NCBI GenBank assembly: GCA_047495785.1 | Contig: JBLDXI010000019.1 | Coordinates: 2,108,001-2,172,000 of the forward strand | Origin: Lepidodermella squamata | Lineage: Eukaryota; Animalia; Gastrotricha | DNA: 64,000 nt | Reading direction: 5' to 3' | Shown: positions 176-64,000 of the stretch, in pieces | Numbering within the stretch: position 1 is the first letter of the stretch | Layout of the letters: each line of letters starts with the position of its first letter | Position numbers and translations under genes: made by a program | Notes under the pieces: generated by a model | Told to the model about the DNA's origin: nothing | Databases searched by the model: none | The model's input: only the letters and a program-made list of their open reading frames with translations

Positions 176-835
176 CTGAAACAATCCATACAGCATCTTT
201 CGGGCGTTTCGAGAAAGAATCGACAAATTCGTTGATTCTCGCTCGGATATTTCTTTTAAAATTATCGCTAGATTTAACTTTTTCTTCAACATTTTGCGAA
301 GCACCGTATGGGAAAACAATTTCCGAATATCGACTATACGACATGGTGTAGTTGAATCCGAAATTATGCAAAAAGTCCCGATATTCCGCATCGTATAATT
401 TGTTCAATTGAGGCGGTTCCAAGGTGAATAGAATGTAATTTTGCCACGGTTTTCTCGCTTCAATCGGAAAATCGGTGTAATGATTTTGGAAGAAGCCATT
501 TGTTTGAAAAATCAAAGCATCAGCCTCAGAAATTAGCGAACGATTTGTTGTTAAATAGCATCGATTTCGCTGGGTTGTAGTCACCCAAGGTCCGTTATTT
601 TTAGCGAAAACCTTCGACCAATCCGGGTCGTCATACCAACTGCTCCATAACCTTGAAAAAAATTTAATTAAAAAATTAAAAAATAATGATTGACTCACAA
701 TATAATTTTCGTCGAGTTTTCCGGAACATTCGAATTACCATAAATTAATGTGAATTTGTGAAAATATGCCGCCAATAACCAGGTCGTTGATAATATTGCG
801 CCGATGATTACGAAAAAAATCGGATAGCGACTCAT
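176..835 (-). CDS. GT10 alpha-1,3/4-fucosyltransferase paralogue 1 (type II membrane; 3' exon lies left of the window)
   Basis: Exon 1 835..699 (MSRYPIFFVIIGAILSTTWLLAAY, TM), 47-nt GT-AG intron, exon 2 651..176 with LWSSWY, CYLTTNRS..ADALIF, TLEPP, FNYTMSYSRYSEIVFPYG, DAVWIVS; donor gtaaaa at 175. Confidence 0.88.
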
Positions 836-2773
836 TTATACCAGCCTCACGTGATGAACGTCCGGGTCATTGGCAATTTTTCAGCTCATCCGCACAAGTT
901 AATTTATCACAGCGCAATTTCGAGTTTATAAAAAATTCATGCCATTTTAGCTTGTTGCCTCGCAAAGAAAATATAAAGCCGAAATTGTGTTGCACAGGTG
1001 TGAAAAGAATAGTAATAATAATAATAATAATGTCGTGTCTGCGATAAGAGAGACACGGGGATGATACCTGTTTACTATTTACCCATATTAATGCAAGTGA
1101 ATATGCCTGTGTTTTACGCTAAAAAGTGCATTATTTATGGCATTCATGCCCATCGTCGCTGTCAATAACAAACGAGCGAAATGTTTACTTGCTCAATGAC
1201 CGCCCTTTGAAAGGCCTAGATTATGATTATGATTATGCTTAATTTCCGTTTTCCAAGTCCAATCAGTGTATTTTGCCTTTCATCTTTTTTATTTACAAAT
1301 GAGATTTATTTACAGTAATTTTCAACAAAATAGCAGGCAAATAAAGTCAGATAGCCGCCATCTTTTTCATCATAATAGCCACTTGATTATTTTTGACTTA
1401 AATTAGCACTCAAACTCAAAAGTTGACTGAATGTGAGCCATTACGTCTTATTTTGTTGGCAATTTAAAGATCGGCCGAAGCCGTCGTGGACACCCGGCGT
1501 CCCGTTCTGGCTTTTGCCACAGCACTCCGTGAGTGCGTGAGCCGCTCATGTAAAGCAGCTACTGCAGAGGGAGCCCAATCACTCGGGCCGCAATTTTCCG
1601 GCCTCTCTGCAGCAATAATGATGCAATAAAATTAGCACCGGGGCTCGCGGCCGAGCAGGTCATTTAAATGATAGGTAATTTGCGTATTCACACAGCCTTC
1701 GATTGAGGAATTAATGATAAGGCGCACACACGTAAATTTAAACGTCTCATAATTTCGTAACCGTCTGTTATTTGCGCTATTCAGCAGCCAAGAGATGTGC
1801 AATGGGTCATTTTTCGAATCAAGGACGGCTAGAAAGCTGCGGCAAATTATGTGTTTTATGTTCTAGCAGATATTTCAAGCATTCATAAATGGGACGTTAA
1901 CCATGTCATGCGTAGACTCATGTGAAACATATTCATCATTTCTGACACTTTCGCGGTGTTTTCTAGATGACCGGATAAAACAGTCCAATGACCCATGGAA
2001 TGGGTTAGAAAATTGCATTAAAATCCTATGTTCTGCAGAAAATCTCGACGCAAACGATAATGACCCGGTGCGATATTCGAAGCCTGATGAAAAATGATAT
2101 CGTTTGTTCATACGAGAAGAAACAATGTTCATACTTGTCCCTTTACCGACATAACATCTGTCCTTACATACTTACTCCATTCTCAGGGATCGCCGCCTCA
2201 TTGTCCATTAGAATGATGGATGCGGTGCAAGCGGAATCGAACCATGACTTAAAAAGCATTTACCAGAAACGTCTTGCCAACTGGCTCAATTGAAAAAGGA
2301 ATAGGTATAGGTATATATTCACACCATATAGAGGTTAGAAATATAGTCTCTATGATTCAGTCTTAGATTTTGGCCATTTCCCCGAAGGAAATCGAAGCTT
2401 CAAAAAGTCACAGTTCGGGTGCTTTTTTGGATAACTTTTGGGCCGGTGTCTGGCTTCTGGCTTCGGTTTTCAAGGAATTTTACAAGGACTAAGACACTTG
2501 CCCCTGTTTGGCGCCAATTTTACCACGCGTGTTTCCAATTTTACGGAGGGCGAAGGCAGGCGAAGAGGGATCATCACGTGAGACAGCTGAAAGTCCTGAA
2601 TTTACTATGAAATTCATAATTTTCAACAAATCAATCACTGTACTTGATCTTTTAAGACTTAAGATATCACGTCAATAGACAATAGTCGTGCTTTCTCCCG
2701 CTAACAATTGTTAACTCTTAAAAATATCGAATTTCGATATCAAATTCAACTTTGACTTAGACACAATCGCTCT

Positions 2774-4422
2774 CTACGTGACGAGCCGAGTTCCAGAATC
2801 CATAGATGCAGGCGATCTATTTATCGAAGAGTGCACGACCAATGGGTTGTTTGGATATCGCTGCGACAACCGATTGACAAAGTCCTTATACAGCGCATTA
2901 GTATCCACCAACGTAAGCTGTTGGCAAAGGCTATGAGCATGAGCATCAATTCGCCGCGCCCCTGCCTCGCCGTAAATCGTTACGACAGATTTGAGCATTG
3001 AATCATTATCTTCCCTGCGTTGGCTCAAGAGGTACGCCTTGTAAAGCGATTGCAGCCTGTACAAAGATTCGCCTACTATTGGCGCGTTAGAAAAGATACA
3101 ACCCCATTTTCCACCTGCAACACAAACAGAATTAGCATTGTGTTATTACCTTTTCGATCTGAGAAAAAGAAAAACCGTTGTAGAAGAACAGAAAAGCCAT
3201 GACAAAGCATATATCCTCCCGAGTGAGGCCGACTGCTTGTTGCAGATGCCACAGCCGCCTTGTTTCCTCCGCAGCATACTTGGTTTAAATGCATCATGAA
3301 GCTGTAATAAGACTGTGAGAAAGCACGGCATTTACCTTCATTTTAGGGAAGTGATCTGCCACTACTTGGAAGTTGGGATCAATCATTCCAAGAGCAAGCG
3401 GGAGTTCGCGGGTCGTATTTTCGAGAATCAGCGCTGCTGCGTAGCTCGTTGTAAAAAGCTCACATCTCTCGCGGAATGAGAAGTCCTTGAATCCTGATAA
3501 AGACAGCAATTTTAAATGAATTATCATTAATTTGCGAAATTCGAAGTTCCGGATAACTAGCCTCTAAGTTTCCTTTGCGTAGAAACGCTTGATCTAGTCA
3601 TTAATTAGCTAGTTAGCGCATCTAAACTAAAATAGAACCATAGGGTTAGTCTATGTTTTAGGACTTGCCCGAGACAAAATCTGACCGGAACTCATGGAAA
3701 ACCTAAGAGGGTCCAATTCCAGCCAATAACAATGAAATTCACATGGAATAAAAACTCGGAAAATTACGTGTAATTTAATAACCTGGTATAGCATTTGTAA
3801 ACTCGCGGACCATCAACACTTGAGGAATGAACATGTTGCTCATAATTTCCATCCACACCTGACCGGTAGAGTGATACGGCGAGAGCATCGGAATCTTCCT
3901 GAAACTCAGCTATAAAGGGAAAACTCATCATATCGCGTAGCATATTCGAGTAGAAATCTAGTACGTTGTTCAATGCTGATAGCAAGCGATCAGAAGCAGT
4001 AAACAAATTGCTGATATCTTGCTCGATAGTTGATAGATCAGTTTGAATCTCTGCGCAGATTTCGTAGCTGTCGTTTCCGAGCGATTGACGAGTGCGGCAA
4101 GTTCGACTTTGAACCTCGACGAATCTGCGAAAACGACAAGCCGAACACATCGATCGCCATTTCTTGCCATTCCCAGCAGTGATCAGAGCCCTTCTCGAAC
4201 GTTCGATGCAGTCTGAACCGATATCACAAGTCAAATCGCTACCGTTGGATCGTTGGCGGATGTAGAAACGGCGGCAAGCTTCACAGACGATTGCGCCGTT
4301 TCTTAACCGTTTATTCGCCTTATCGATTCCACAAACCTGGGTGATAGGAAAATCTATGACACGTTAATTTGCCTTAAAATACGGTGGTATACCTGGCAGG
4401 TAACTGAGTTTTGAGTGTGCAT
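2774..4422 (-). CDS. Divergent nuclear hormone receptor (C4 zinc-finger DBD + LBD-like domain), tandem copy B
   Basis: Six phase-consistent exons 4422-4393, 4336-3965, 3909-3783, 3493-3336, 3278-3176, 3114-2774. CQVC..CEACRRF..C-x5-C..CSACRF; LBD-signature-like VREFTNAIPGFKDFSFRERCELF and GLTREDICFVMAFLFF. Confidence 0.8.
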
Positions 4423-4638
4423 GATGGAAAATTATTTTTCTGTAACGATTTTTTAGCCTGAAAGTTAATGGAAATAGCGTCAGTAGCATTGCTTTGACTG
4501 TCAGTTCAATTACATTCGCAGGAACTGACAAGATGCCATAGCTCTGTAAAATTGATCAAGTAATTAATATACTTAACAGTTCTGGGAATTCGATTGTATG
4601 CAAACTCTATTCATTGTAAATTTGATTATACCCTAATA

Positions 4639-5140: not shown

Positions 5141-6509
5141 CTAGCAGGGAGTTTCATCTTTGAGTACAACGACAAAAGCTTCGTTAGGATAGCGTTGTGT
5201 CAAATGTTTGACAAAGTCCTTGTAGAGTGGATTGGCATCCATCAGAGAAAACTGGCGGCAATGCTCCTTTGCATGAGCGACCATTCGTCGCCACCCGGCC
5301 TGTTCAAAAACCGTTAACATCGCCATGAGCCTCGTATTGATCTCCTTCCGATGATGGCGAAGTAAATACGCTTTGTAGAGCGATTTCAGCCTGAATAAAG
5401 AATCGGAAATTATCCGATTTGGAACAGCACTGCCCCACTTTCCACCTGGAAACGAAATTTGATAAGCCGGTAGGTAATATCATGAAAAAACTTGTTTACC
5501 GTTGTAGAAAAATAAGAAAGCCATAAGAAAGCATCGTTCCTCTCGAGTCAATCTGACTGTTTGCTGCATGTACCAAAGCTGCCGCGTTTCCTCAGCTGCA
5601 TACTGAAAGATAAGCGTAAAATGCTCATCTATCATCTTTCAGCTTTCAAACCTACCATCATCGCAGGAAAGTGGGAAGCTGCAACTTGGAAATTGACGTC
5701 ATTCATTCCTAATGTCACAGGTGTTTCGCGAACCGAATTTTCGAGAATTAATATGGCTGGATAGCTTGCCGTGAATAGTTCACTTCTCTCGCGGAGTGGG
5801 AAGTCTTTGTAACCTGAAATAAGGTTAAATTGTGGTATAATATCCTTAATCCTTAATCATCAACAGTATTTACCTGGAATTCCCTTTGTGAACTCGCGGA
5901 CCATCAACACTTGCGGAATGAACATGTTGCTTAAAATTTCCAACCAAACTTGAGTGGTCGAGTGGCATGTTGTAAATATCGGCATTCTCCTAACGCTCAG
6001 CTACAGAAAAATTAAAAGATCAGCTAGAGTTGGTTTACAGAATCCTACATTGTTTATTGCTGATAGCAAGCGATCCGCTGCCCATACCAAGTTGTAAATA
6101 TCCCTCTCAATATTGGCTAAGTCGGTTTGAATCTCTGCGGTCATTGTGCTGCTTCTTTTAGAGAAGGATTTCAATAATGGCTTGCTTCTAGCAACTTCGA
6201 GGAATTTCTGATAACGGCAAGCCGAGCAGAGCGATCGCCACTTCTTGCCGTCTCCGGCTGTAATCACGCTTCTTTTTGAATTCGCCATGCAGTCCTCCGA
6301 GCCAGATTGGCAGATCAAATCTTCGGCATTGGATCGTTGTCGCATGTAGAAACGACGACAAGCTTCGCAGACGATTGCGCTATTCCGCAACCGCTTATTC
6401 GCCGTTGCGATGCCGCAAACCTTGAGATAATGAAAACATGAGGAAAATGTTGGAAACACAGCTTTAACTCGCGGCATACCTGGCAATAATCGGAGATAGG
6501 ATTTGGCAT
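5141..6509 (-). CDS. Divergent nuclear hormone receptor, tandem copy A
   Basis: Six exons 6509-6480, 6420-6049, 6000-5874, 5813-5656, 5602-5500, 5445-5141, with the same intron positions as copy B. CQVC..CEACRRFY..CQSGSEDC..CSACRY; VREFTKGIPGYKDF. Confidence 0.8.
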
Positions 6510-7077
6510 TGGATAATATAGCTGAAATACAAAATTTGAGAATATTGTCTGGTCGAAGGTTAAATTGTCATCTGAGCCACGTTGTCACGTCTCCGTGGGA
6601 AAGGAATGTTTACCATAGTTAATTGAAGTGTGTGGTAAATTGTTGAGCATGCAAATCACGTGAAGTGCAGGTAATTTGATAGCTCAAAATTCGGACATGC
6701 ATTCTATATCACTCAGTACTCTCGATAAATCTCAACCTTCTATAAAGCAGACAAAACTTGGTACATGACATTTTAGCGCAGTTATGTCTTCAACCTCAAC
6801 CGTATGAACACATTTTGCGCTCCTGGAATGCGATGCGAGCCAGGGTCGTAGCTTCAAAAAAACACCATTAGAAATTCAATTTTATTTCTCTCATTTCTTC
6901 CGTCAATATAATCTCACTCAGCCGATAAATTTCTGCTATGAAACAGTACGTGAAGTATACGATATAATTTCGTCATCAGGTATTCCGAGAACGCGAGGTA
7001 AAAAAATAAACGGACAATTTCATTGCAGAACAATAAACACATTTTGAAGATAAGAAGGCACAACATAGAAGATGAAA

Positions 7078-9379
7078 TCAAAACTGCAAATACGGCGATT
7101 CAGGATCTTCGGGGTCAAAATCCGGGGTCCAGATGCAAGCGCCGATTTTCGACCGAATATCCACGTAAGTCCTATTATTTTTACTACTGCTATCATTTTG
7201 CGGGGCTAATCTCGAGTTAAGATTTGACGGCGAGGGTGATGAAGATACAAGTGATTTTAGCACGGGTTTAGGTGGGTCTTTCGCATGCAGATGCCGACAC
7301 AGATTGCGCCAGCCGTTCAACACGCGCCAATTCGGGTCGCTCGGCACGTACTTTTCGTACTGCCACGAGTAGAAAGCCGCCAGTTTTTTGTAGCTGTAAG
7401 ACGGCGATGAAATTTCTGTCATCAGCCGCGCCAAATCAGCCGCGTCTGAGAAGGAACTCGCATCTATGTAAGAACCCTCTGGAAGGTATTCCGAGTAGTT
7501 AGCCAGGCCGTAGACTATGGGAATCACGCCGTAGTTGGCACTAGCTGCCAGGCCCTGATAGGCTTTTTCGGAGATGTACTCCTCGCATAGCGCGTTTTCA
7601 AAGGCAAAGTAGAAGCGGTATTGTTGGAAGAAGGTTTTCGGGCCGAAACTTAGCCAGAGATCGTCCGGCTGTTGCGAATCCCAACACTTACCCCATATGT
7701 CGATTTTGATGCCGAATGACTGAAGGGATCGGACTATGTTTTCGCGACGACCCATCGTTCGACAATCTAAAGATGATAAGCAAATTAATAGTTAGCGTTT
7801 GGATGACATCAGGTAAATTCAGGGCTGAATGATGAACTTCGACTTAGAGACATCAATTTGAATAGCCAAGGGAAACATCTGGCTGAAAGATGAAAGATTC
7901 ATGTGATGCATGGTTAATCGTTCAGTCAGTATCAGGAAACTTAAATCTTGGTTCTTGTTGTATATTTAGAGTCATAATTTAGAGTCACGGAATCAGCAGC
8001 AGTACAGCTGTTGATATGGCCCATCAAATCCTTAAGGATAGCATTAGGATCCTGAATAATCATCTTTACTCAAATAGCCAACCTACTCAAAGACGCTAAC
8101 TAATCAATCAATCAAGCAATTAATTCATCAATTAATCTCATCAAATTATAAACTTAATAATTTATAATCCTGTGTCTCAAAGGCAATGTTATAGTTTGTA
8201 TATAACACAGTATACCAATAAAAGGTTTTCTCTCTTATATTGGGAATCACAAAGGTACTAAGTCAACCAAATATAGTCAATCATCGAACCTGAAACTATC
8301 CAAACTGCGTCTTTCGGCCGATGAGCGAAAGTTTCGACGTATTGGTCGATGCGATATCGCACATTTTCGACAAAGCTCGGATTTGCCTTTGTCTCGTTGC
8401 TGAAATCAAACACCTTGCCGTAAGGAAAGACAACGTCGGAGTACCGACTGTAAGACATGGTGTAGTTAAAGTTCATCGACTCGACAAAGTTGCGATACGG
8501 CGCGTTCGCCAGCCTGTTCAGCTGTGGCGGTTCCAGCGTGAATAGCACGTAGTTTTGCCACGATTGGCGCGGCACTGACGGCAGCGCTTCTGGCGAATAA
8601 TTTCGGTAGAAATCGGTACTGTGGAAGATGAAAGCGTCGGCATTTCGCGCCAGTGAGTGATTGGTGGTGAGGTAGCAATATTGCCGGCGCAAGTTGCCAG
8701 TTTCGGGGTCTCGCTCATTGTACGCAACCCAAGGGCCGCCATTTTTCGCGAAAATTTTCGACCATTCCGGATCGCGGTACCAAGCAGTCCATAATCTGAA
8801 TAATAAATTGGAATAAATATTTAAAATTAATTGAAAAAGCGAATGGCTAGTGTACGTTCCCCAGGGATCTCTGGCTAAAACAAGGTATTTGGCAGATTAG
8901 GATGATGGAATTAGGATGAAAGGAAGTAGGGGAATCAGTTTGGGGAAGATAGATAGAAATATTGGGAGGTAGGGGGAACTTTGGGGAATTGGGAATTATG
9001 TGATTCATTAGAAAAAGGAAAGGAAAGGAAAGGAAAGGAAAGGAAAGGAAAGGAAAGGAAAGGAAAGGAAAGGAAAGGAAAGGAAAGGAAAAAGGACTTA
9101 CAAAATTAGTTTCGTTCCAAGATGCAAGTCATCAGTGATGATCTCATCCAATGTTGCGATATCAACATCTCCCGGGCCGATGCGTCTATGCCGACCAGCT
9201 CCACCACCGCTGTCAATAAATGACGACCAGTCGATGCCCATGTCGATATCGCCATTCAGGATAGTTATCGCCGACAAAAGCACAATCAAAGAACCGATGA
9301 GAAAAATTAGACACAAAAGTTCGCGCCGTTTCCGCTGCGCCGGACGTTCGACGGGGCGATATTCGGTAACTAGCAGCAT
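7078..9379 (-). CDS. GT10 alpha-1,3/4-fucosyltransferase paralogue 2
   Basis: Exons 9379-9102 (TM LLCLIFLIGSLIVLLSAITIL), 8795-8290, 7766-7078; alpha-3 motif YRFYFAFENALCEEYISEK..VIPIVYG..LPEGSYID. Confidence 0.92.
9017..9091. repeat. (GGAAA)15 microsatellite in intron 1 of FucT paralogue 2
   Basis: Perfect pentanucleotide run, preceded by a degenerate purine-rich tract from about 8895. Confidence 0.95.
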
Positions 9380-12300: not shown

Positions 12301-12868
12301 TGTCAGGGTATAATACCGACCGGTTTTTTTGTTGAAAAAACCACCCACCGGTATAAACCGGTTTAAACCGGTGAAAAAAACCGGTTTTTTTACATATGCT
12401 AAAATCACTGAAATGTCTTATTTGACATAGCTAGAGCTCGCTAGCACTTGGTCCTATAGAGATTTGGACTGCACCACGTGATTCTACGTGAAACACTACA
12501 TAGTTTGACATATCACACGGCCATTTTTCTCACTTGGAAGAAAAAAAATTTCTTAGTGCAATAAAGCAATAAAAAAAACTAAAAAACGCAGTTATCTCCG
12601 GAAGTATGGTGATTAGTAAAATTCTGAAAACGGATTCGGATCCGCCGTGAAAAGTTACCCCCCCTGGATTTCTAAGGGGGGTTTCAACGACAAAGGAAGC
12701 GGTTTTGCCGGTTTTATTTGAAAATTTCAACTTGAAAGGTCTAAAACCGCCTAATTATACCCTACCGGAAGTGAAACTGATTTCGCGATAGTCTCTTTAC
12801 CATTATAGATATCGCCATGAAAATTTGGTATCTTAGGTAGAATTTGCCGCTGAACACGATGGTGACAT

Positions 12869-15800
12869 GCACATTTCCGGGCCCGCCTATGTTTCGTCCG
12901 GGCGCGCGCACTGGTTGGCCGGCTGTTTCGACCAATGAGAGCGCGTAATCAGACCGCAGGCGCGCTGTTACGCCCTGCTCGATTGCGCGCGAGTATAATT
13001 ACACACTTCACGGCCGCGCAGGCGAGGCCGCGCGGCAGTCGCGGTCGCAGTCTCGGCTGAATTTTTGGCGCAAAATTCAAATTCAAATTTTGGCGCCAAT
13101 TTTGAGGTGAAAGAAAATTCAAAAGGAAAATTCGTCATTACTCGTGAATCGTGCTATAATATTGTTCAATAATGACTAAACGCATTGCTGATCTGCCGCC
13201 TGACGTCGAGGCTATCTTGCCTGACGATGAACACCGTCTTCTTCACATCGTCACTAAATTCGAGCGGAAGAATGAGTCATCGTGGATTCTGCATTTTCGA
13301 GCGCCTTTCAAGTCAAACGAATGGGGCAGGTTTTTGGCCGGTGTACAGCGTCGCAGTCGAGTTGATTTCAAAGCTAAGCCACACGGAACGACGAAACCTA
13401 AAGGCATCAAATTCATCGCGAAGGAAGAGCTTGTGTGTAATCACGCTGACCACGAGAGCGGTGTACACGACTCGCGCAGAAAATGCGCCGCGCCCGGCGA
13501 AAAGGCGAAAAAACGGCAAGTCACCTCAAGCGGCGCTGCTCCGAAAAGCAAAATAACCGATTGTACCGCATCGATCTCGCTTTCAGAAGTCGCACCACTG
13601 ATCGACGACGGCACGCCAAAAAGTCGCGACGCAGCTCGAAAACGGCTGAGACGCGACCCGCTGATTACTTCGCACCCTACCATCGTCCAAATCGAGTGGC
13701 AGCATGACCATAATATTGGAGTCTTGGCTGCGTTAAGGTGGCGAAATCACGCCGAGGGCGTTGATACGGCAATGTTTTGCCATCTACAAGCCGAAGGTAC
13801 AGCATCTGCAGCAATGCAAGCTTATAATAATGAGCTGGAGGAGCTGTATCCGGAAATACCCTGGTTGCAGCTGTCGGCTGATCGCTCGCTCTGCCCAACG
13901 CGCAAAGATTGGTACCACTTCGCCGATAAATTACAAGTAAGCACACACGGCGATCGTAATGGAGAGTTAATGCGGTCGAAATTGAAGGAGTTAGCTGCGC
14001 AGCACTCGGAAACGTTTAGTTATCGCGAGACACTGGCGAAAAACGGCGAGCGGGTCTGGTGCTTGTTAGTTCGAACCCCGATGATGCGCCGTGTTTACGA
14101 CACCGTTTCTGAAGCTCGGGACATCCTTTTTACCGATTCAACCGCCAGCTGCGATCTTGTAAACAGCTCTCTGACTTTGATAGTCAGCGCGTCATCAGCA
14201 GGCGCCTTGCCAGTAGCCGCCGCAATTCATTCATCGCAGACCGTCGATTGTTACAAGTAAGTTGAATGAATTTTATTTTATTTTTTATATTATATTTTTA
14301 GACATTTTTTTTTTAAATTTTATCCGAATTTTTTAATTTTAAATTATATCAAATTAAATTTTAAATTAATCTGCTAAAAAAACTGAATTTTACGGCGGAA
14401 CTATTGTGCATTTTGACGTAGGGGGGAAATTTGCCGATGTGAAAATTTCTCAACCATTTTTTTAACTTGGGGCAATAATAAATTGATTTTTGTTATTTAA
14501 TTCAATTTATTGTTTTTTTTTAAACAGACTGGCGTTTGGCATGTTCAAACAAACCTTGAACGGTGTTGAGCCAAAGCTGTTCTTAACAGACGACAGCGAT
14601 GCAGAGCGGGAGGCTTTACGCCTTGTCTTTGTCAATTCCACTGTGTTGCTATGCGCATTTCATATTCTCCAAGCCCTGTGGCGGTGGCTGACGAATAAAA
14701 AGCACAACATCGCTGCCGAAGACGCGCCGCTTTTGCTTCAACGTAAGTTCGGGAAATATTTAACGCGATTGAATTTTAATTAGTTTTTTTCGCAGTGTTC
14801 CAAAATGTTGTTTTTGCACAAACCGAAAAAGAGTACGAAGCTGCACGTGGCGCTTTGCTCTATTCGCCGCTTACTCGAAAATACATCAATTGGCGACTAC
14901 ACATCCTTGCCCACCTACAGCGTTCTCGCCTTTTCGTGGCTGCGTTTCGCAATTCCTACTCGCATGGTCACATGACCAACAACATCGTCGAAAGGTGAGC
15001 CCTTTATTTCTATTTTATATGCAACAATTTTCAATTATTTTTGCTTCATTTCAGATGCGTTGGCATTTTAAAAGACGTGGTGTTATGCCGTGTTCGCGCC
15101 TTTAACCCTGTCGCGCTTGCGCAATTTTTGAGCGAAAAATTTGATAATTTTTTTGCGAAAAAACTTCTTGACTTTGCGAACGGTCGCAATGATTTGAAAA
15201 CGGAATGGCTGCGCTACAAAGACGCGGCAATCGTCGAAATCGCCCAGAAAAACAGCGAAATCCAAGCATTCGATGTCACGACTGCGAAGGGTGATAATTA
15301 TGTTGTAAATTTGGCGGCGTGGCTGTGCAGTTGTCCTTATGGTCGAAATGGCCGGTTTTGTAAACATTTGGTAAGTAAAAATTTGGTTATTTTAATTTAT
15401 AAATTTTAATTTTATTTTGAAAATTTTCGGAATTTTTTTATATTTTTATCAAATTTTTCTACGCTCGAATTTGTGTAAATTTATGAGATTAATTTTAATT
15501 TTTTAATTTTTTTAATATTCGCTCAGGTTCATGTCGCTGCTGCTAACAATGTTGCGCTGCCTACAAGCCGCATGGTCGTTGGAACTCCCGACGTTAAGAA
15601 ACTCTTGGCGTATATTGCTGTCGGAATTTATTACGACGATGAACTTTTTCTCGGCCTGACTGAGGTCAACACCAGCGCGAACGAGAACGCTGCATCGTGT
15701 TCAGCTTTTGTTAACGTACCACCGTCCAGTGGCCTCGAAATCGCCGATAATAGCGAAACCAATGCTATTACTATTGAGCAAGAAACCGACGAGAATGCGG

Positions 15801-16561
15801 GAGAAGAAAACGACGACGGAACGAAATTCGCCGAAGAGTCACTCGTTAATTTCAGGTCCATGTGCGCTAAAGTGGAACGTCTCATCGCTGAAAACAAGTC
15901 GAATGGCGGGCTTTTGAAGCAAATGAATAAATTCAGCCATCGGCTATCAACCCTCGCAGATACCGGTGTCATGGCGATTGAGTCTTGGCTCGCCAGGGCC
16001 TTGATGAAGTCAGGCGGACATAATCGCGGGGCGCTTATTCATGTGCAGAGTACCGCGGTCGGCCGGCGGATGTTTAACGTCGGTGGCTCCAGGCCACATC
16101 GCGCCGGAAGGAAACCAAATGGGTATCGAGCGCCGAAAAACTACGCCATTCGCCCAAGAAATTTTCGTGAGAGAAACGGCATTCCGCCCACTCAGTGACT
16201 TGAGATTATCTCGTTGTGAGCAATAATTTAAAATAATTTGAATTCTGATTCAGTCGTTTCATAATTTTTAAATCGATGTATTTAATCGTTACTTGTTTAT
16301 AGCGCTTTCCATGACATTTGTTGTAAGCACTCAGCTCTGAAAGTATTTGAAATTTAGCTCTGATGATTGTTGAAATGAAATAATTGGAATAAAGTCCTGT
16401 TCTGTCTCGTTTATTTGAGTGGCGTTATGCAATGCAAAATGCGAGTGTGCGAGCGAGCGGCGGGCGGCGGCGGCGGCGTAATAACGCGGTCTCATTGGTC
16501 GAAACAGCCGGCCAACCAGTGCGCGCGCCCGGACGAAACATAGGCGGGCCCGGAAATGTGC
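12869..16561. repeat. Perfect 72-bp inverted repeat pair (12869-12940 / 16490-16561) bracketing the transposase gene
   Basis: GCACATTTCCGGGCCCGCC...GACCAATGAGA and its exact reverse complement; no adjacent duplication seen. Confidence 0.9.
13172..16198 (+). CDS. Mutator-family (MULE) DDE transposase with SWIM zinc finger, apparently intact
   Basis: Exons 13172-14256, 14528-14742, 14796-14994, 15055-15370, 15527-16198 join in frame; FTDSTAS, LTDDSDAE, LCAFH (CxxH), TNNIVER; SWIM CSCPYGRNGRFCKH. Confidence 0.88.
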
Positions 16562-49911: not shown

Positions 49912-52900
49912 ATGTCTTTAAAGCGATGTATTTACAAAATTTTACGATTTATCATCGCGAATTGGATGATTTTCGCTTTCATCGCTTTCGCCGTCTCAGT
50001 GGTGTCAATTCGTTTCCTGTTGTATGTACCCCAAAAAACGACCATCTACCACAGCAGCGTTGAAGACTATCAAGACTCGCCGAGGCATCACGTGCCGCAT
50101 GAGGCTAAACCTGGTAATATTTACGCTGATGACAGCGACGCTGGCCAGCCGATAATTGTCTCATCGAGCACAACCTGGGCACCACCCAAGGCCTCGGTTC
50201 GAAAATCGTTCGTATCATCGGGGAAAATTTACCAAAATACAACTACCGAGTTGTTTTTAATCGACGGCATGGACTGGCGAATCGCGGCCTGGGAGTATTT
50301 TATTCATTTTCAGGGGAAAAATAACTCGAGGCTTATTCTAATGTGGACACCGTGGTATGACGATGATACGTGGAAAATTCACATGCGGCGAAATGACGGG
50401 CCAGTTATCCGGCTTGGCAAGCTGGATGAAGCCGGCAAATACGACGATTCTCGAACTTGCTACATCGGTCTTGATAGATCCAAGGTCGAGGAGGCGACTG
50501 CGGTCATTTTTCACGGCTCTGGTATTGACATTGACCTGAGTTTCTTACCCGAATCGCGGCTGCGGAGTCAATATTGGGTTTATTACGACATTGACCCGCC
50601 GTCTATGAATCGGTTGACGAAAGTTGCGAATTGGAACCACCGGGCGAGTGCGATCGGTTTCAACTGGACTTGGTCCTATTCGCATTTAGCCGATGCTAAG
50701 CATCAGTATGGGTACTTCCATAAGCGAGTTGCGAGTAAGGCTGAAGAGGAAGAACAGCTCAGGCTGATTCGTAAAAATTTGGAAAATTTTTCAAAGCGGG
50801 AATTCGATGGCGTCGTTACGGCTGGAAGATGCATGTAAGGATGACAATTTTTCACTTTATTCCGATCTCAGTTTCGTAAGCAGAAATTTGTCCTAAATCA
50901 GGACAGAATTTCAATTCTTTGAATTAAAGTCCAGAATATGTTTGAGAAAATCATTTCTAATTCCCTATTGACACGCGCTATTTCGATAGAGAAAACATTG
51001 GGGAGTAAGACATCATCCAAAATCCCATATTTTTATACCGTATTTCTCGAAAATATACGACACACCTGTATATATCCCCGCTCCCTAATACAACCCGACG
51101 AAAAAATCGTTTGTTCATATTTAACCCAGGCCTCGAAATTGTACCACAGCTATTTTAATTTGGGCGAAGCATGCGTTGGAACAAAAGAAAAGCCTTATTA
51201 ATGACGCATTATCGTAATCAGTGATTAGCTATCGCGTAAGCAGCTTCGCAACGTCTGATCTTGGCACCATTCATAAGCCAGCAGAAAATGCCCATTCAGC
51301 ATTCACTAGCTGAGACACAGAGTTTTATTTTAACATTTTCATATCCTTCTTAATCGTTTTAACCTTCTGGAATCGATGATGGCTGGCTCTCCTGATCGTA
51401 TTCAAGATTCCGTCTAGGTGTCCGAAGAAGACAAGCGAAAGCGGCACCGCAAGTATTCCCTCGCATTTTCACTGAATCGACAAATAAAACAATCTAAAAA
51501 CGTCGTCTTAATACGAATTGCTCGCGGCTTTTTGTGATGATTCGCAATTAAACAGCACACCCGTATATATCCCCACTCCCTAATACAACCCGAATCAAAA
51601 ATCATTTGTTCATAAATATAGCCCGCGGTAAATTTTCGAGAAATACGGTAACTTACGGTTACGGAGAAATTCCAGTGTCAAATAGGTCACGTGACCTTAC
51701 TACTTTATCTCATACCTGAGCGGTTATCTCGAGAACGGTGATAGCTATGAAGCCGCTCTCAAAGAAAAAGATCATCAGCTAGGTGAGTTCTACCTAGAAA
51801 TGCCTTCCGTTTGTGGTCACAGGTGATATTTCGTGCAAAATCCATTTAGATGGCACTATAGTTCACTTAGGTCCCATAAACAGGTCCTCGGTTATCCCCA
51901 AGCCGACTCTTATCCGATTTTTCCGGTTTTTTCACCGATTTTATACGATTTATCAGGAGATAATTCTTTTAGACACCCTGTGATTGTAATCACCCTACAG
52001 GATATATTTTTAAATATCGAAAAAGCTGCCATTGGGCTTTAAAAAGTGAGTGGTTGAACCTTCTTATGACTTGGCCTCATCTATTGAGATATCAGAATCA
52101 ATCATAAAATTCCGCGTTAATTACAAGTATTAGGGTGGGCATCTTTGGTTAGTTTTGAAAAAATGGTAAAAATTTTATTTATTAATGTTCATATTTTAAT
52201 GACATATTTTTTAATTTTTTTTGCCAGAACTCAAAGCTCGCGGGAGGTTTTGATTGCTCGATTGAAAGAATACGGCTTGAAGTTGGAATTTCTCGGCCGC
52301 TGCAACAACCATTTTACACCCGAGTTCCTACTCGAAACCCTTGGCGATAAAGAAATGTACTCCAGATACCGGTTCTTCTTCGCCTTTGAAAACACCCGTT
52401 GCGACGATTACATAACTGAGAGGGTAAAACTGAAATTTAAAATTTTTTGAAATTTTTACAATAATTTTTAAATCAGGTTTATCAGGCTTTCAATGTATCG
52501 AAACATCATAGCGTTATTCCAGTTCTTTACGGTAGCAGCTGTGAATCATACGCGCGTTTTCTGCCGAAAGATTCCTATATCTGTGCCGAAGATTTCCCAT
52601 CAGCCCGGCAACTAGCCAAGCATTTGAAGCTAATTTCAACTAGTCCAATATCAAAACTCGAGCGTTATTTCACGTGGCAAAAAGACTACGACTTATACAT
52701 GCGTTTCATGCGAGCTTCTCTGCACAAATTATGCGAAAAAATTTGGGAGGTGACTGCTGATCAAGTCGAAGAAGAGGAATTAGATGAACTGGACGAGGCA
52801 ACGGTTAAACCAACGAAGCCTTCAGCGATTGTTCACGATATTGCTGCGACGTATGGCAAATGTTACGAGCCGCCCCGAAAATGGTTGGGAATCGAGGCCG

Positions 52901-53013
52901 ATGATGCCGTTGAAGAGAATGAAAATCCGACTACAACGCCTGCTGGGAAAGTTAAATCAAAATCGAACAACGAATTGCCTCATCCGGACGTTAGAGCTGG
53001 TCTTAGAAGATAA
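49912..53013 (+). CDS. GT10 fucosyltransferase paralogue 6 (divergent active-site motifs)
   Basis: Exons 49912-50834, 52228-52423, 52477-53013; TM, LMWTPWY, FNWTWSY, YRFFFAFENTRCDDYITER, VIPVLYG; DIDPP in place of xxEPP. Confidence 0.88.
51038..51648. mobile_element. pogo/Tc2-like MITE in intron 1 of FucT paralogue 6
   Basis: TIR CCGTATTTCTCGAAAAT, TA flanks, internal direct repeat GTATATATCCCC(G/A)CTCCCTAATACAACCCGA near both ends. Confidence 0.85.
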
Positions 53014-54122: not shown

Positions 54123-56296
54123 ATGCGGCTTAGGTTTAAATACTTCCTAGCGCTGTCTATCGCCACGATTATCATTCTTCTATGGATTAGAGGGCGATAT
54201 TTCGGCCCACCTTTGGTCCAACGTCTAGCGTCGTTGAATTACCACATCGAACAAATTCCACGGCTTAAAAATGTCGACAGAAATTCGACGAAATTTATCT
54301 TACTCTGGACTAAATATTTCACAAACGCGAAATGGTCGCAATTTTTTGATTATTTACCGCATAAAATCGACCGAGGAGATGGCAAATCTTGCGTCTATAT
54401 GACTTCGGATGCTTTGCGGGTCGATGAAGCTGACGCCCTAGTTTTTCACGGCCCGGACGTTGACTACTACAACATACCGAACGAGCATCGAATTTCACGC
54501 CAAAAATGGGTTTATTTCGTGTTAGAATCGGCGATGAATCTGCATTATTACGAGCCGGCTTATCTTGCCGATATCAATTCGGTGACTTACAACTGGACGA
54601 TGAGTTACTCGCGGAAAAGTGATGTTTGGTACCCGTATGGCAAGTTTAAAGATGTCGACAAGTCGCAGGTGAAAAAACTTGCGAAAATTCGGTCACGCAT
54701 CGAAGGATTTAAGCGCAATTTTTGGAAGCGGAAACACGATGCTGTTTGGGTTGTCAGCAATTGCAAGTAAATTTTTGCTTTTAACATTTTCTATTTTTAA
54801 TTAATGAAAATATGATATTGCCAAATTTATTCATACCTATGAGAGCACTGTAACATTGGGTAGCTTTCGACAAAACTATGGCTTTCAAAGCTCTAAAAAT
54901 CAAAGTTTGCTGAAAAAATAAAAAATTTGAAACAACGATGGGCAAGGCGATTCCTCATTTTTCTGGTAATTTTTATAATTTGGCAACTGATTTTTCAAGA
55001 ACATAAAATTCTTCTTAAATTTAAAAAAATTTAAAAATTATTTCGATTTTTGGAATTATGTGTCTCGTAATTATGGAAGGAGTGTCCACATTTAGAGTTT
55101 TCCTTTTTTTAAATCAAGGCGAGCTCCTTAAATCTCCAAAATTTATTTACAAATACAGATTTCTCTGGCGAAGGTTTGCCAATTTTTTTCAATTTTTTGG
55201 ACGAAAGCCAATTTTTTTGAATAATGTTTTCCAACTTTAGGACCCATTACGGTATCCGCAATTTTTCCGAATATTTGACAATTTACCGCAGAATTCCCGG
55301 AAAATCCCGATGGTAATTGCTTCGGTTATTTTCGGTATTTTACCCAGGTGTACCAAATTTCTCCGAATTTTTTAATTCCATTTGCAATCTACTCTCATGA
55401 CATTTTAGATTTTTCTAAAAAATTTTCTAAAGATTCCTATGAGTTCATTTCTCTTTAAGGGTTTCTAATCATTTTTCGTGCATTTGCGTCACTTGCGGGA
55501 CACGCTGTCTCAAATAGATTCCATTTTCCCCATTAGATTTTAATTTTTAATTTTTTTTTATAGAACCCCTTCATTTCGAGAGCGGCTTGTTCATAAACTA
55601 AAACTGCTTGGAATGGACATAAAAATAATCGGCGAATGCGGCCAATCATTCAACGGAAGCGTCAGTTCGGTCGATTTCAGCCACTACCGCTTCTACTTCG
55701 CCATGGAAAACACGCTATGCAGCGATTATATGACTGAAAAAGTTTTCCACGGCTACGACGCCGCTCTTCAGTACGGTCTCATCCCAATCGTTTACGGCGG
55801 CTCGAAATTCGATGAACTACTCCCACGAAATTCCTACATCGACGCCAAGTCTTTCAAATCAGCTACGGATTTATTTCATTATTTACAAAATATTCGCGAC
55901 AAATTGGACACATTTTTTGAATGGCAAATGTCGTTCGAGCTTGACGGTGATTACAACCGAAGTTTCACGGGCAAGCACCACGAATCGCGGCTAGGCTGGC
56001 CGGCTCTGTGCGACAAATTATGGCAGGAAAATCCGATTTCAACCATCGAAAATGTTGCCAGTCACTTCGGCCCGTGTGAACGAAAAGTCGACTCGGCCTA
56101 CTTTCAATTGACCCAGGAGGAAACTGTGCGGTTATACGTGCCAGATATCGAGAATATGCTGCGCCTTGTCAAGCCGAATTCGATTTCGCCTAACGGGACT
56201 TTTGACTTTGAAACGTTGAAAAATCAGCTGTTAAGTGGCGAACACGGCATAAATGATGCGATGCTTTTTGGATCTTTGATGTCAGTCTCATTTTGA
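54123..56296 (+). CDS. GT10 alpha-1,3/4-fucosyltransferase paralogue 7
   Basis: Exon 1 54123-54766 (TM YFLALSIATIIILLWI; VLES; WVVSNC); exon 2 55564-56296 (YRFYFAMENTLCSDYMTEK); ~70-aa C-terminal extension. Confidence 0.9.
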
Positions 56297-58082: not shown

Positions 58083-59724
58083 ATGAATACCTCAAGTGAC
58101 AAAATACTGCCGAATAATTGTACTTACCGCTTGATATCTTACTGCAATTTGCTACTCCTTGGACTGCTGGTGGCCATTTTCATCGCATGGCAAACAGGGG
58201 CTCACGAAAAGTTGTTTCCGTCATCTTTCCGAGGTCGCAAGTCATCGTACCCTACTACTACGGCATCTATTCCTACGCCGGCTAATCTTGGCGCGACTTT
58301 CGCTATCGATATACCGAAAGAGATTGCATTTCAGCCTCCAATTTCACCTGAACAGTACTATAAGGATAATCCGAACTGGCAGTATGAAATAACCCCTCGC
58401 TACCACGATTTCTCTAACGACACCCCTACCAAAACCGTCATCCTGTGGACGCCATTCTTCGGCGACTGGTCCGACCATTTTATCCACAATTACGGGCCTT
58501 ACGTCGAACTTGAAGCCTACAACTTCACGCGAAGATGTTTTTTCACGAGAAAACGGGACGCAGTAGAAACAGCTAGTGCTTTCATGTTCCACGCGCCTGA
58601 TATCAACGACCAGGACATGCCACAGGTGAGGTATCCATTTCAACGATGGGTGTTCTATGACCACGAATCACCGGCGAATTTGGCGTTTCCAGATGAGAAA
58701 TGGGAGAGGATGAATATGATAGGTTTCAATTGGACGATGTCTTATGCGAAAACAAATGATATTCACTACCCTTATGGTTACTTGCGAAGGTCGAAGGTCC
58801 CACTGAACGTCACAGCTTGGCGGGAGAAGGTTATTGGCTTTGCGAAAAGCTTCAAGAACCGACCAAAAGATGGTGTTTGGATTGTAAGCAATTGCTGGTA
58901 AGTCAATTGAAACACTTAGCAACCGTTGCTAGGATTAAGCGTCGCTATTTTCCAGGGCTAGATCAGCGCGTAAGGAATTGGTGGACGCTCTCATTCGATT
59001 GGGTCTCAATATTGACGTATTTGGAAACTGTGGCAATCCTGGTGTTGATGAGTTGTGGCGGGTAAATGGCCAGCGACACTTCTTCTCCCAATACCGGTTC
59101 GTTCTAGCTCCTGAGAATTCGCTCTGCGATGGTTACATAACCGAAAAAGCTTTTCGTGCTTTCTATGGCAACTTCATCGCTGGCCCGATACCTATTGTCT
59201 ACGGCGGTGGGAATTACAGTGATTTCTTCCTAAATGGAAGCTACCTCAATATTAGAAGCTACAAGAAAGTCAGCGAACTGGCCGATCATATGAAAAGACT
59301 GTCGAAGCTCGACGAAAAATCTAAGGAGTTGTTGAAATTCTACCATTGGCAAAAGGAAATCAACCCAGCTTACGAGCTTGGCTACGAAATCGAATCACAC
59401 TTCTTCGATGCTTTCCGTCTATTGTCGATTGCTAGAAAGGTTCCGGATTCTAGCCTAAATGAACAGCTGGCCTTCTACACCCGATGGCGATATTTCTCGG
59501 CCCCTTATTCCTTTCCCGGTGAACGAGAGAGCAAAGTAGCTCCGGATTGTTACGCGTATTACTACACGAAGAGGGTCGGAATGCGCAAGTTGTGCGGAAT
59601 GCTCTGGGAACAAGATACCGGTACTAATAAGAACCAACTGCCAAAGTACCATTCAGTTGTCGAGGACGTGCATCGCAACGTCGGCCATTGCCTTCCGTCT
59701 GAAGAAGTTATCATAGATGGGTGA
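58083..59724 (+). CDS. GT10 alpha-1,3/4-fucosyltransferase paralogue 8
   Basis: Exon 1 58083-58897 (TM LLLLGLLVAIFIAW; DHESP; WIVSNC), 58-nt intron, exon 2 58956-59724 (YRFVLAPENSLCDGYITEK). Confidence 0.9.
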
Positions 59725-59839
59725 TTCGACTGATAGGCCAGTGATTCTCACATTTTTTCACCCTCATTGAACTATTTTATTAAAATAAATCTCATTGTCA
59801 TTTCACTTTTAATGTTAAACTAATGTGACCAGCGGTTCT

Positions 59840-61485
59840 CTAGAACAAGTCATTGATTGGGCCGAAAGAAGTTGACGGCATTGGCCTGCCGCTGTAATCA
59901 TCAAATTCGCACGGTTTTGACGAGAAATGCAGGTGTCGGCGTGTTGGTGCTAGCGAAAAGTGTGACGCCGATTCCGCAAAGCCACTTCGCGTTATGACCA
60001 GCCGATCCATCTTAGTCAGCAGTAACCAGTCGACGTAGATTTTAGCCGCTTCGAACCACGCCGAGTCATCTGTAGCCGAAACTTGCGGCAGCTCTTCAAT
60101 GTGCCTTATCGTCAGATTCTGGCTTTTGTCAGTCGTGAACATTTTCACAGTTGAAGAGAAGTTGGTGAACACAGTGGATGTAAGAAGGTTCTTCATGTCG
60201 AGATAGGTCTTGTCGTCGTCGCTGGTCATGAAGATTGTGACATTTTTCCCTGTGAAGACATCCGAAGCTAGAACTTGAGCCAACTCGTTAGCGAAGCACT
60301 GCAGATCTGATGACTTGTAAACGGATGGATTGTCTTGCTCTGAGAGAAAAATTGAGCATTAGTTAGAGAGGTTTAGGGAGTATCAAAGGTCAACGATAAA
60401 AAAATCAAATTTCCACACTTAATATCATTTTTCAGAAATTTTACTCAATTTACTTAGGTTAAGATTAGGTTAAGATTTAAGAGAGCTTACTTACTTGAAA
60501 ATGCCAGTGTCCGCAGCTGGATGCCAATTTTGAGTGACTGCCTCCAAAATTTGAGTCCTACAGTTCCAGCAATTACCTTTTCGACAAGCTTTTGCAGCTT
60601 CGCATTCGGTTTCTCGAAAATGATTTGAAGAGCAGCTGACAGCGCAATATTGAAATCCTTGTTGTTGTCCAGCAAACCCGGCGCGAAATGTTCAAAATTA
60701 GGCTTGAACACTTCATTTTTCAGCAATGCATCCAGTCCAGCATGCCGATTCGACATCAATTTTACGTGTTTGAATTGATTAATTTCCCGAGGCAAACTCT
60801 TTCGCGCCATCAAATTGAAATATTTCCTAGCTTCAAGATTATCAAAGTGGCACATCCATTTTGTATTTTCCGGGCTGTAAGAGTTGCCGTAGAGCTTCGA
60901 GAAAACGTCGGTATCGGCGTTGTAGTAATGTTCGTTAACATCGAAATATTCGGAGACATCCGCCGGCTTTGTCCAATCAAAGTTGAAAACTCGACCAGTG
61001 GCGATCGCAAGGTAGAAAGCGATAACCGTACCTCTTAGCCGATCACCTAAGCCGTTGCAATAGCTAGGTTTTGTGAAAGTACAGTTTCCTTTCTGTCTAA
61101 CAGCGGGATACATGAAGTCGAAACAGGTAATATTGCTCGGGAAAGCATTCGGCTTGCAGAAAGAAGTTACAAATCGAATTTCACTCCGATTTTCCGATTT
61201 TAACAGCGCTTCCATTCGAGCCAAGTAGTTTTTCCGGATCGATTCAGCCAGTGCTCTTGCCTGGGCTTGTCTCGGAGAAATAGGCGCTTTCACCTTTTCA
61301 GGTAGTAGGTCTTTTTCTAAGCGACCGGCACTTTGCATCACCCGGTGGATAAAATTGCTCCATTCAGAATCGAAAGCAGTGTCTCTGTGTAGCTCGAACT
61401 TTGGGGTTAAAAGTAAAAATCCACTCATACCGAGAAAGACAGAAGTTAACAGGAAGCATCTATTAGATCGCATCTTCCTTATCAT
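59840..61485 (-). CDS. Non-GT10 fucosyltransferase with alpha-1,2/alpha-1,6-type motifs (GT11/GT23/GT37/NodZ-like)
   Basis: Exons 61485-60495 and 60339-59840 in frame; N-terminal TM; NGLGDRLRG..FYLAIATGR, IGIQLRT (motif I), IFMTSDD (motif II), DWLLL..MDRLVITRSGF (motif III). Confidence 0.8.
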
Positions 61486-62014: not shown

Positions 62015-63449
62015 ATGTTCACATGTCGAAAAAATGAAATAATGCGAATACGCGTGAAAAGACTCATTTGCTACCTGTCTGGCTTCTTATCATTTTGTTT
62101 GCTCATTGAAGTCATCAACATATCATTATTCGCCGGCAACGGACAGCGATATCACGATGGTCCCATGCGCATTATGCTTTGGACCAAATTTTTCGGCGAC
62201 CCGAAATGGAAAACGTTTTTCAAATCGCTACCAGCGACTTTGCATTACAAGAATCAGGATCAGCAATGCATTATCATGACGAGGGATCAATTAGCGTTAA
62301 AGGATGCCGATGCAGTGATATACCATGCCTACGATCTCGTGGATTTAGACTTTGAAAATCGAACTCGGACCCAATATTGGACTTATTTCACGCTGGAATC
62401 TCCGAAAAGCATGTGGGCAGTCGAGGCGCTTGAAAATCAATTACGGCTGATTAATACCGTGAAATTTAACTGGACTATGAGCTACAACCGGAAAAATGAT
62501 ATTTGGTATCCTTATGGCAAGTTCAAGCCAAGATCTGGCGAGAGTTCGCTTGACGTTCGGTCGAAAATAGCTGCCTTCCGGGAAGATTTCGCCTCTAGGC
62601 CTAGGGATGCTGTTTGGATTGTTAGCAACTGTCGGTAAGTTTTTTTGCAAATTAAAAAATGTGATTCATTTGCCATATTCTTACAGCGCGTCCTCAGAGC
62701 GAGAAAAGCTAGTCGCCAAACTTCGCAGCTTAGGACTGGATATTCAAGAGTTCGGCGAATGTAACGGCAAAAAGTTCAACGAAAGCGTTAGCTCAATAGA
62801 TTTCAGCTCTTACCGTTACTTCCTAGCCCTGGAGAACTCGTTATGTGAAGATTACATATCAGAAAAGGTATTCCAAGCCTATCATGCAGGCCTGCGTTAC
62901 GGAGTAATACCTATCATTTACGGCTCGGCCGATTACCGTGGCATGCTGCCACCTCACTCTTATATAGATGCTCGATCTTTCCGGAAAGTTTCAAATCTTT
63001 ACGATTTTCTCGCGCAGCTGTCGTCGAAAAATGGAACGCATATGCTTGCCAGCTTTTATGAGTGGCAAATTTACAACGAATTGGACGGCTATGATGAAAG
63101 CGGCAGTCATTACGTGTCAAAACATGGCTGGCCAGCTTTATGCGAGAAATTGTGGACAAGCATTGGTGAAGAATACACGGTCGACAATGTCTGGCACCAT
63201 CTCGGCCCTTGTGTTGGAAAGATTGACCAATCATATTTCGACATGTCAATACGAGAGGTTGCTAAGCTGTATATTCCAGATATTTACCATAGAATAATCG
63301 CGGTCAGGCCTCAGGCTCTCTATGATGGTTCTATTAACTGGGAGCAGCTCATTTCTCAATACAAATTCCAGGACCCGGCGACTGCGTGGGATAGAATAAA
63401 CTTTGAATACTACAGCATTTTGAATAAGCCTCAAGCGAATGAGTTTTGA
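62015..63449 (+). CDS. GT10 alpha-1,3/4-fucosyltransferase paralogue 9
   Basis: Exon 1 62015-62634, 52-nt intron, exon 2 62687-63449; TLESP, WIVSNC, YRYFLALENSLCEDYISEK; closest to paralogue 7. Confidence 0.9.
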
Positions 63450-63497
63450 ATGTGATGCTCTCTCATAGAATAAATTCATTCACATCATTTTTACTTG

Positions 63498-64000
63498 ATG
63501 ATTATACGCGTTAAAAGAATTTCTATTTCTATTATTAGGCACTACAAATGCCTGCTTTTACTCTTTTGCTTTCTGATTTTGATTTCGTTCATTCGACGAT
63601 GGCTTGCACAGAAGGCTGACTCGGAGGAGGAAGCCCGCCTCAATCGGCTGGCGCAGAAATTTTATCGCGAACACCCGAATTGGCAATATGAAATCTCAAG
63701 TCGCCTACATGATGCTGAAAAGCAAATCCCTACTAAAACAGTGTTACTATGGACAACATTTTTCGGCGACTGGTCTGACCATTTCGGTCACAACTATGGT
63801 CCCTATGTCGAACTGGAGGCTTACAACAACTCGAAACGGTGTTTTTTCACGAGGAAACGAGATTTTATTGAAGACGCTAGTGCTTTGATCTTTCATGGCC
63901 CTGATTTGCGGCTTGAAGATATGCCTTCGATAAGGCACCGCTTTCAGAGATGGATTTTCTACATGCATGAAACTCCAATCAATGCTCACTTTGTCACCTT
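63498..64000 (+). CDS. GT10 alpha-1,3/4-fucosyltransferase paralogue 10 (5' part, runs off the window; absent from the ORF track)
   Basis: Open frame MIIRVKRISISIIRHYKCLLLLFCFLILISFIRRW..HPNWQYEI..PTKTVLLWTTFFGDWSDHF..NYGPYVELEAYN..MHETP; closest to paralogue 8. Confidence 0.85.
   Translation, partial: MIIRVKRISISIIRHYKCLLLLFCFLILISFIRRWLAQKADSEEEARLNRLAQKFYREHPNWQYEISSRLHDAEKQIPTKTVLLWTTFFGDWSDHFGHNYGPYVELEAYNNSKRCFFTRKRDFIEDASALIFHGPDLRLEDMPSIRHRFQRWIFYMHETPINAHFVT

Follow-up and report, generated by a model that had tools for sequence, protein, structure and literature searches.

A tandem array of diverged GT10 fucosyltransferase genes in the gastrotrich Lepidodermella squamata

Gene content of the locus

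We analyzed a 64,000-nucleotide stretch of genomic DNA from the gastrotrich Lepidodermella squamata (positions 2108001-2172000 of contig JBLDXI010000019.1, hereinafter C19, in assembly GCA_047495785.1; the entire stretch is denoted the window), which carries a tandem array of genes for predicted fucosyltransferases of glycosyltransferase family 10 (GT10). The GT10 genes were detected by Pfam scans of the open reading frames (ORFs) of the window, by a six-frame scan of the whole genome (121.2 Mb, 151 contigs) with the PF00852 and PF17039 profiles, and by a six-frame boundary scan of the window with 20 kb on each side (104 kb), for which hidden Markov models (HMMs) were built from the window's own copies. 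The three scans agree on ten GT10 genes (G1 to G10) that touch the window. They are located on both strands and reach both edges, the left one being spanned by G1 and the right one by G10, in agreement with what the initial annotation of this sequence had claimed. Extension of the contig, which that annotation had proposed for sizing the array, adds two genes, G11 and G12, just to the right of the window, giving 12 GT10 genes in about 70 kb (Table 1; gene positions are window coordinates), and locates both ends of the array: the HMM scan detected no further GT10 copies in the 20 kb to the left of the window or between 69 and 84 kb. Beyond the array, the right flank contains genes for a P-type cation ATPase, a C2H2 protein, and a fusion of a GT6 domain with a fucosyltransferase-like domain.

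The GT10 domains of the window copies score above the gathering thresholds of the families, with 82-110 bits for the C domain (cut-off 23.9) and 52-76 bits for the N domain (cut-off 28.7); in G3, the N domain is interrupted by an intron, and one of its pieces scores 26.7 bits, and the GT10 calls for G11 and G12 come from the six-frame genome scans. The best named database matches are tick, spider and insect proteins annotated as 'alpha-(1,3)-fucosyltransferase C-like' (FucTC), with 30-41% identity. Two word-based protein searches returned no database protein with more than 51% identity to the array genes and did not recover the array genes as such. The metagenome proteins P0110 and P0112 (from ENA) are exon-sized, with just an N domain in one and just a C domain in the other. 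Their identity to G4 and G5 is 49-51%, which suggests that an environmental sample contained a relative whose genes are split in the same way. A scan of JGI metagenomes with alignment yielded 16 short contigs with 26-39% identity, none of them informative on arrays in relatives.

The N and C domains are mostly found in separate ORFs, and at each junction, a canonical GT..AG intron restores the frame. The in-frame stops encountered in the six-frame matches fall inside introns, and all 12 spliced frames are free of stop codons and frameshifts, so that the frames are intact, as the initial annotation had it. The spliced models were used for alignment, residue tables and Nei-Gojobori (NG86) counts, and the database and fold searches were run exon by exon. 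The typical intron length is 47-58 nt; longer introns, of 523, 797, 1393 and 3579 nt, are present in G2, G7, G6 and G5, respectively. A phase-2 intron immediately after the 'VSNC' codons is common to G3 and G5 to G10, and G12 has an intron near this site; G1 and G2 share a phase-1 intron two codons upstream of this site, and G4 and G11 have no intron there. A hydrophobic 19-mer is present within 45 residues of the start methionine in G1 to G3 and G5 to G12; for G4, the anchor is found only in the candidate upstream exon.

Besides the GT10 genes and a single gene of a second fucosyltransferase family, the tested part of the window's gene content comprises one Temptin/copper-monooxygenase gene along with transposons and several Cys-rich ORFs. 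The ORFs in the G5 intron have no relation to the MULE-SWIM element located elsewhere in the window.

Table 1. Genes and other features of the GT10 array and its surroundings (window coordinates)
Feature	Position	Strand	Description
G1	-488..835	-	GT10, 3 exons, C-terminal exon reaches left of the window; Glyco_tran_10_N 4.7e-17; C domain C19:2107632-2108132; introns of 47 nt each, GT..AG; ATG and membrane anchor at 835
Cys-rich ORF	3767..4363	-	sub-threshold match to nuclear-receptor C4 zinc finger
Cys-rich ORF	6004..6567	-	sub-threshold match to nuclear-receptor C4 zinc finger
G2	7081..9379	-	GT10, 3 exons; Glyco_transf_10 6e-28; introns of 306 and 523 nt
MULE-SWIM element	12304..16899		transposon
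G3	21991..24143	+	GT10, 5 exons; first exon 21991-22019 (29 nt), 78-nt first intron and start codon read from the sequence
Temptin/copper-monooxygenase gene	25906..28846	+	between G3 and G4; Temptin C-terminal domain (1e-28) and copper type II ascorbate-dependent monooxygenase N and C domains, one gene
G4	34159..35214	-	GT10, N and C domains in one exon, Pfam 1.9e-31 and 9.3e-14; candidate anchor exon 36462-36704
G5	41009..45865	-	GT10, 2 exons; both Pfam domains; intron 41547-45125, 3579 nt, GT..AG, phase 2
Transposon-like ORFs in G5 intron	41753..43810	-	469-aa ORF with a faint MULE match (E 0.12) and C2H2 ORF (zf-C2H2_jaz 6.6e-5)
G6	49912..53010	+	GT10, 3 exons, most divergent copy
G7	54123..56293	+	GT10, 2 exons
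G8	58083..59721	+	GT10, 2 exons
GT37-like gene	59843..61485	-	2 exons, signal anchor, no GT6 domain; XG_FTase E 0.014
G9	62042..63446	+	GT10, 2 exons
G10	63498..65037	+	GT10; ATG 48 nt past the G9 stop codon; extends beyond the window
G11	65182..66495		GT10, one exon, right of the window
G12	67620..69041		GT10, right of the window

Catalytic residues and a second fucosyltransferase family

The closest solved structure is that of human FUT9 (8D0O), matched by G11 with an E-value of 2e-20, and the array proteins are expected, by sequence, to adopt the same GT-B fold of GT10. In FUT9, Glu137 is the likely catalytic base, Arg202 and Lys256 contact the diphosphate, and Asn195 and Asn246 are involved in the transition state (PMC12717137). 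In the alignment to 8D0O, the equivalents of Glu137, Arg202, Asn246 and Lys256 are retained in 11 of the 12 genes, and so is the FxxxFEN....Y.TEK motif. The position of Asn195 varies across the copies (D/H/N/S/R), as does that of the acceptor-side His141 (L/R/M/N/S). Unlike the base and the Arg/Lys clamp, His141 of FUT9 is not conserved in the array; given this, the low overall identity (about 25-30%), and the unrelated stems and C-tails, acceptor specificity cannot be transferred from FUT9.

The gene located between G8 and G9 on the opposite strand belongs to a different family. The Pfam XG_FTase profile scores 14.4 bits on this gene, below the family cut-off of 23.4; its exons have no sequence match in PDB, and a word search of the protein collection found no homologue of the second-family domain. 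The gene has three homologous neighbours, and it is a clear paralogue of one of them, the domain L004:3826-4851 (E-values of 4e-21 and 1e-9; 31% and 41% identity). This domain is encoded by a single exon and makes up the C-terminal part of the GT6-fusion gene at 77.8 kb, the other exon of which matches Glyco_transf_6 (1.6e-11). An AlphaFold model was made of this paralogous domain (predicted local distance difference test score, pLDDT, of 64; predicted template modelling score, pTM, of 0.65), and a Foldseek search with the model retrieved Arabidopsis FUT1 first (E-value of 5e-9, TM-score of about 0.5), followed by FUT8, NodZ and POFUT2. The alignment of the second family contains 'IGIQLR', the conserved Arg motif. 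By its predicted fold, the second family is a member of the alpha-2/alpha-6/O-fucosyltransferase superfamily and is closest to GT37. The initial annotation had called the window gene an alpha-2/6-type fucosyltransferase, and at the superfamily level this identification stands, by way of the paralogy to a domain with this predicted fold. Compared with Arabidopsis FUT1 (the GT37 xyloglucan alpha-1,2-fucosyltransferase, 5KOP/5KOR), the family shares the 'GIQxR' and C-terminal 'D..LL.K.D.L..(T/S)RS.F' motifs; in contrast, identity is only 16-17%, the XG_FTase score is below the cut-off, and the gene here is an animal one with a type II anchor.

Genome-wide, the GT37-like family comprises at least 75 exon-level matches in about 45 clusters, with six of the matches within C19:2.06-2.19 Mb. 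Three GT37-like genes flank the array, namely, L001:3189-4917 (-), L003:2017-4417 (+) and L004:3826-6155 (-); the L001 copy is near-identical to the window copy over long stretches, and the L004 copy is the one fused to a GT6 (ABO-like) domain.

Phylogeny, divergence and selection

For phylogenetic analysis, all PF00852 loci of the genome were extracted and exon-level matches were grouped, resulting in 74 loci, for which a quick tree was constructed with branch support from the Shimodaira-Hasegawa-like approximate likelihood ratio test (SH-aLRT). All 12 array genes fall inside a 38-gene clade that consists solely of genes from this genome (SH-aLRT 99-100). Within this clade, the sister groups are physical neighbours: (G1,G2) with G3; (G4,G5); (G7,G9); and (G8,G10) with G11 and then G12; the sisterhoods of G1 and G2, G7 and G9, and G8 and G10 carry starred support values of 99, and the identity between G1 and G2 is 55-57%. 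The longest branch in the tree is that of G6. Mapped onto the tree, the array label requires 5 changes, compared with 10.6 when the labels are shuffled. The interleaved sisterhood of G7-G8 and G9-G10 points to duplication of a two-gene unit. Across the genome, the approximately 74 GT10 loci are grouped into some 40 clusters, of which the array described here is the largest, with 12 genes, followed by a cluster of 6. Together with the limit of 51% identity to database proteins, the genome-specific clade and the size of the array bear out the claim of a lineage-specific, clustered expansion.

Several pairs of GT10 genes are near-identical: C32:3865432 and C38:677576; C7:2088218 and C32:263162; C7:2145824 and C32:230024; and C1:145386 and C1:175110, the last two being 30 kb apart. 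Such pairs could represent haplotigs left uncollapsed in the assembly, or else segmental duplications of very recent date, and they inflate the count of 74.

The 12 copies share 25-57% amino acid identity, and the divergence is unevenly distributed along the proteins. The mean pairwise identity is 42% in the C (donor) domain, 35% in the N (acceptor) domain, 26% in the C-tail (46-125 aa long) and 18% in the stem (39-155 aa long in those 11 genes whose models begin at the start codon), in line with the strong divergence of stems, acceptor domains and C-tails that had been pointed out in the initial annotation. For the six pairs with the least divergence, Nei-Gojobori counting yields proportions of synonymous differences (pS) of 0.73-0.89, that is, saturation, and proportions of nonsynonymous differences (pN) of 0.28-0.38. 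Given that synonymous sites are saturated even in the closest pairs, the duplications must be ancient. The ratio of nonsynonymous to synonymous substitution rates (dN/dS), which had been proposed as a check in the initial annotation, is 0.08-0.18 where computable and undefined or unreliable for most pairs owing to the synonymous saturation; what can be retained from this analysis is that pN is far below pS. The frames have remained open over a period well beyond what could be expected of neutral sequence.

Origin of the array and alternative explanations

Taken together, these findings make it likely that the 12 paralogous GT10 genes form an old array in tandem, an ordinary product of repeated local duplication in which diverged copies have been retained. 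The array would have been built by successive local duplications, including an inverted duplication and that of the two-gene unit G7-G8 giving G9-G10. Each product would be a type II Golgi-type membrane protein, in which a short cytoplasmic tail and a membrane anchor are followed by a variable stem and a GT-B catalytic domain. By homology, it would be an inverting enzyme that uses GDP-fucose as the donor to fucosylate a glycan acceptor, the Glu serving as the base and the Arg and Lys holding the diphosphate. Purifying selection seems to have maintained the copies over a very long period, and the greatest differences among them are found in the stem, in the domain on the acceptor side and in the C-tail; the likeliest cause of their persistence would be that they have diverged in acceptor specificity and/or in the place and time of expression. 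Enzymatic activity, the alpha-1,3 linkage, the Golgi location and the distinct acceptors of the individual copies are all inferred from sequence. In the genome-wide context, the array is the largest single block of an expansion of about 70 GT10 genes, with a parallel expansion of the GT37-like family contributing the one member inside.

Several observations weigh against this scenario or parts of it. The backbone of the tree is poorly resolved, and the starred branches are compatible with a single in situ origin of all 12 genes without establishing one; furthermore, a dispersed gene, C19:1454350, nests among G8 to G12. The assignment to FucTC is based on the best database matches and on a branch with dipteran FucTC that has an SH-aLRT value of 83%, in a tree that contains no FucTA or FucTB outgroups. 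As for the individual genes, the first exon of G4, near 36704, is a candidate only, the 3.6-kb intron of G5 bears transposon-like ORFs, and G6 has Asp in place of the catalytic Glu, Arg in place of the Lys of the TEK motif, and Arg at the Asn195 position, so that this copy may be inactive or altered in function. The expression of each of the copies is a prediction from the genomic sequence.

Some of these same features would be expected if the array had partly decayed, with several copies being unexpressed or catalytically dead relics of a burst of duplication: G6 combines substitutions at two catalytic or donor-binding positions and at the Asn195 equivalent with the longest branch, the Asn195 equivalent varies among the other copies as well, and the G5 intron carries transposon-like ORFs. 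Neutral decay, however, would have broken the frames, and all 12 spliced frames are open despite the saturation of synonymous sites; with all splice sites canonical and pN far below pS, we consider such decay very unlikely. An assembly artefact, that is, chimeric or duplicated sequence arising from amplified DNA, would merit attention inasmuch as the published L. squamata assembly, if it is the one used here, was built from multiple-displacement-amplified DNA (PMC11660948), and other contigs carry some near-identical GT10 copies that may be haplotigs. The members of the array, however, are only 25-57% identical and differ in intron lengths and flanks, and no suspected chimeric contig was reported for the published assembly (PMC11660948), so that the probability of an artefact appears negligible.

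A different explanation holds that the locus is a co-regulated island, in which the GT10 paralogues and the GT37-like enzyme each add a different fucose to one polyfucosylated surface, cuticle or egg-coat glycan, and clustering has been selected for co-expression. The interleaving of two fucosyltransferase superfamilies, with six GT37-like genes around the array in C19:2.06-2.19 Mb, is suggestive in this respect, and across the genome, there are four cases of a GT10 cluster located within 30 kb of a GT37-like cluster, compared with about one expected (Poisson P of about 0.02); three of the four co-locations, however, are on a single 250-kb stretch and hence are not independent. A hint of shared transcription comes from the right end of the window, where the spacers between G9 and G10 (63447-63500; 48 nt) and between G10 and G11 (L002:1038-1184; 141 nt) are very short. 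An AATAAA is found just past each stop codon, and an acceptor-like, pyrimidine-rich TTTCTTTTGTAG lies 6 nt ahead of the G11 ATG; these poly(A)-signal-like and acceptor-like sites suggest one transcription unit, and in its sequence layout, the G9-G10-G11 segment looks like an operon.

On the other side of the balance, a single family accounts for 12 of the 13 enzymes, all paralogues, with one gene of the second, and nothing in the locus corresponds to a set of enzymes for consecutive steps; the clustered pathway resembling a biosynthetic gene cluster that was proposed in the initial annotation is not supported. Among the ORFs of the array region that were tested, there are no other glycosyltransferase families, no nucleotide-sugar genes, no genes for GDP-fucose synthesis and no transporters; matches to GDP-mannose dehydratase (GMD) are on other contigs, namely, C21, C2, C59, C132 and C17. 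In a crude test, the upstream regions of the array genes share no 7- or 8-mer above a random-segment control. Both strands are used, unrelated genes and transposons intervene, and tandem duplication alone explains the clustering. Because the locus consists almost entirely of paralogues from one family, the GDP-fucose genes are elsewhere, no motif is shared, and the array is one among many, we prefer the origin by repeated local duplication, and co-regulation as an island appears improbable. Somewhat less improbable, albeit still unlikely and speculative, is a broader proposal: that L. squamata has one of the densest fucosyltransferase repertoires among animals (at least 75 GT37-like exon-level matches alongside roughly 70 genes of GT10 in 121 Mb, with a 250-kb stretch of C19 enriched in both), that G9, G10 and G11 form one spliced-leader operon, and that these enzymes would underlie an unusually fucose-rich, combinatorial glycome of the cuticle, adhesive or egg coat. 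If this holds, the G9-G10-G11 operon would be a co-expressed set of diverged fucosyltransferases.

The initial annotation had held that its interpretation would fail if equally dense GT10 arrays were the norm across the clade and had already been described, and in part, this is the case: a 29-gene FucTC cluster (PMC7210998) and the human FUT3/5/6 cluster (PMC12717137) have been published. In the mangrove horseshoe crab, 29 alpha-1,3-fucosyltransferase C genes are arranged in tandem over about 820 kb (PMC7210998). Like that cluster, the array described here is a lineage-specific tandem array of GT10 genes, FucTC-like by their best matches, in an invertebrate, and in both genomes, the tandem clusters are enriched for fucosyltransferase activity. 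Compared with the horseshoe crab, the gastrotrich array contains fewer genes (12) but is about 5 times denser (one gene every 6 kb, the 121-Mb genome being compact), its copies are much older, with saturated synonymous sites, a second superfamily is interleaved, and the phylum is different. The human FUT3-FUT5-FUT6 genes on chromosome 19p also form a GT10 tandem cluster that arose by local duplication and whose members have different specificities for acceptor and linkage (PMC12717137); the human cluster, however, is young (primate-specific) and consists of three partly redundant genes, whereas the array here is ancient, with 12 genes at 25-57% identity. Schistosoma mansoni provides a spiralian parallel, namely, a lineage-specific, monophyletic expansion of alpha-3-fucosyltransferases that is tied to the heavily fucosylated glycans of that organism and includes one pseudogene (PMC3655985). 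In contrast to the ~74 GT10 loci and the 12-gene array of L. squamata, the seven alpha-3 genes of the schistosome are for the most part scattered over different scaffolds, with only one tandem pair, and the family that is arrayed there is the alpha-6 one (PMC3655985). Our literature search found no paper joining Gastrotricha with fucose or glycans, and the L. squamata genome report (PMC11660948) makes no mention of fucosyltransferases.

Tandem GT10 arrays are already known from the horseshoe crab and human, and the locus reveals no new mechanism or new kind of gene organization. Rather, it is a well-resolved case of lineage-specific expansion of fucosyltransferases, from Gastrotricha, and its 12 ancient, intact copies, which differ mainly on the acceptor side, make up a natural panel for the study of the evolution of GT10 specificity and a set of candidate enzymes for glycan synthesis.

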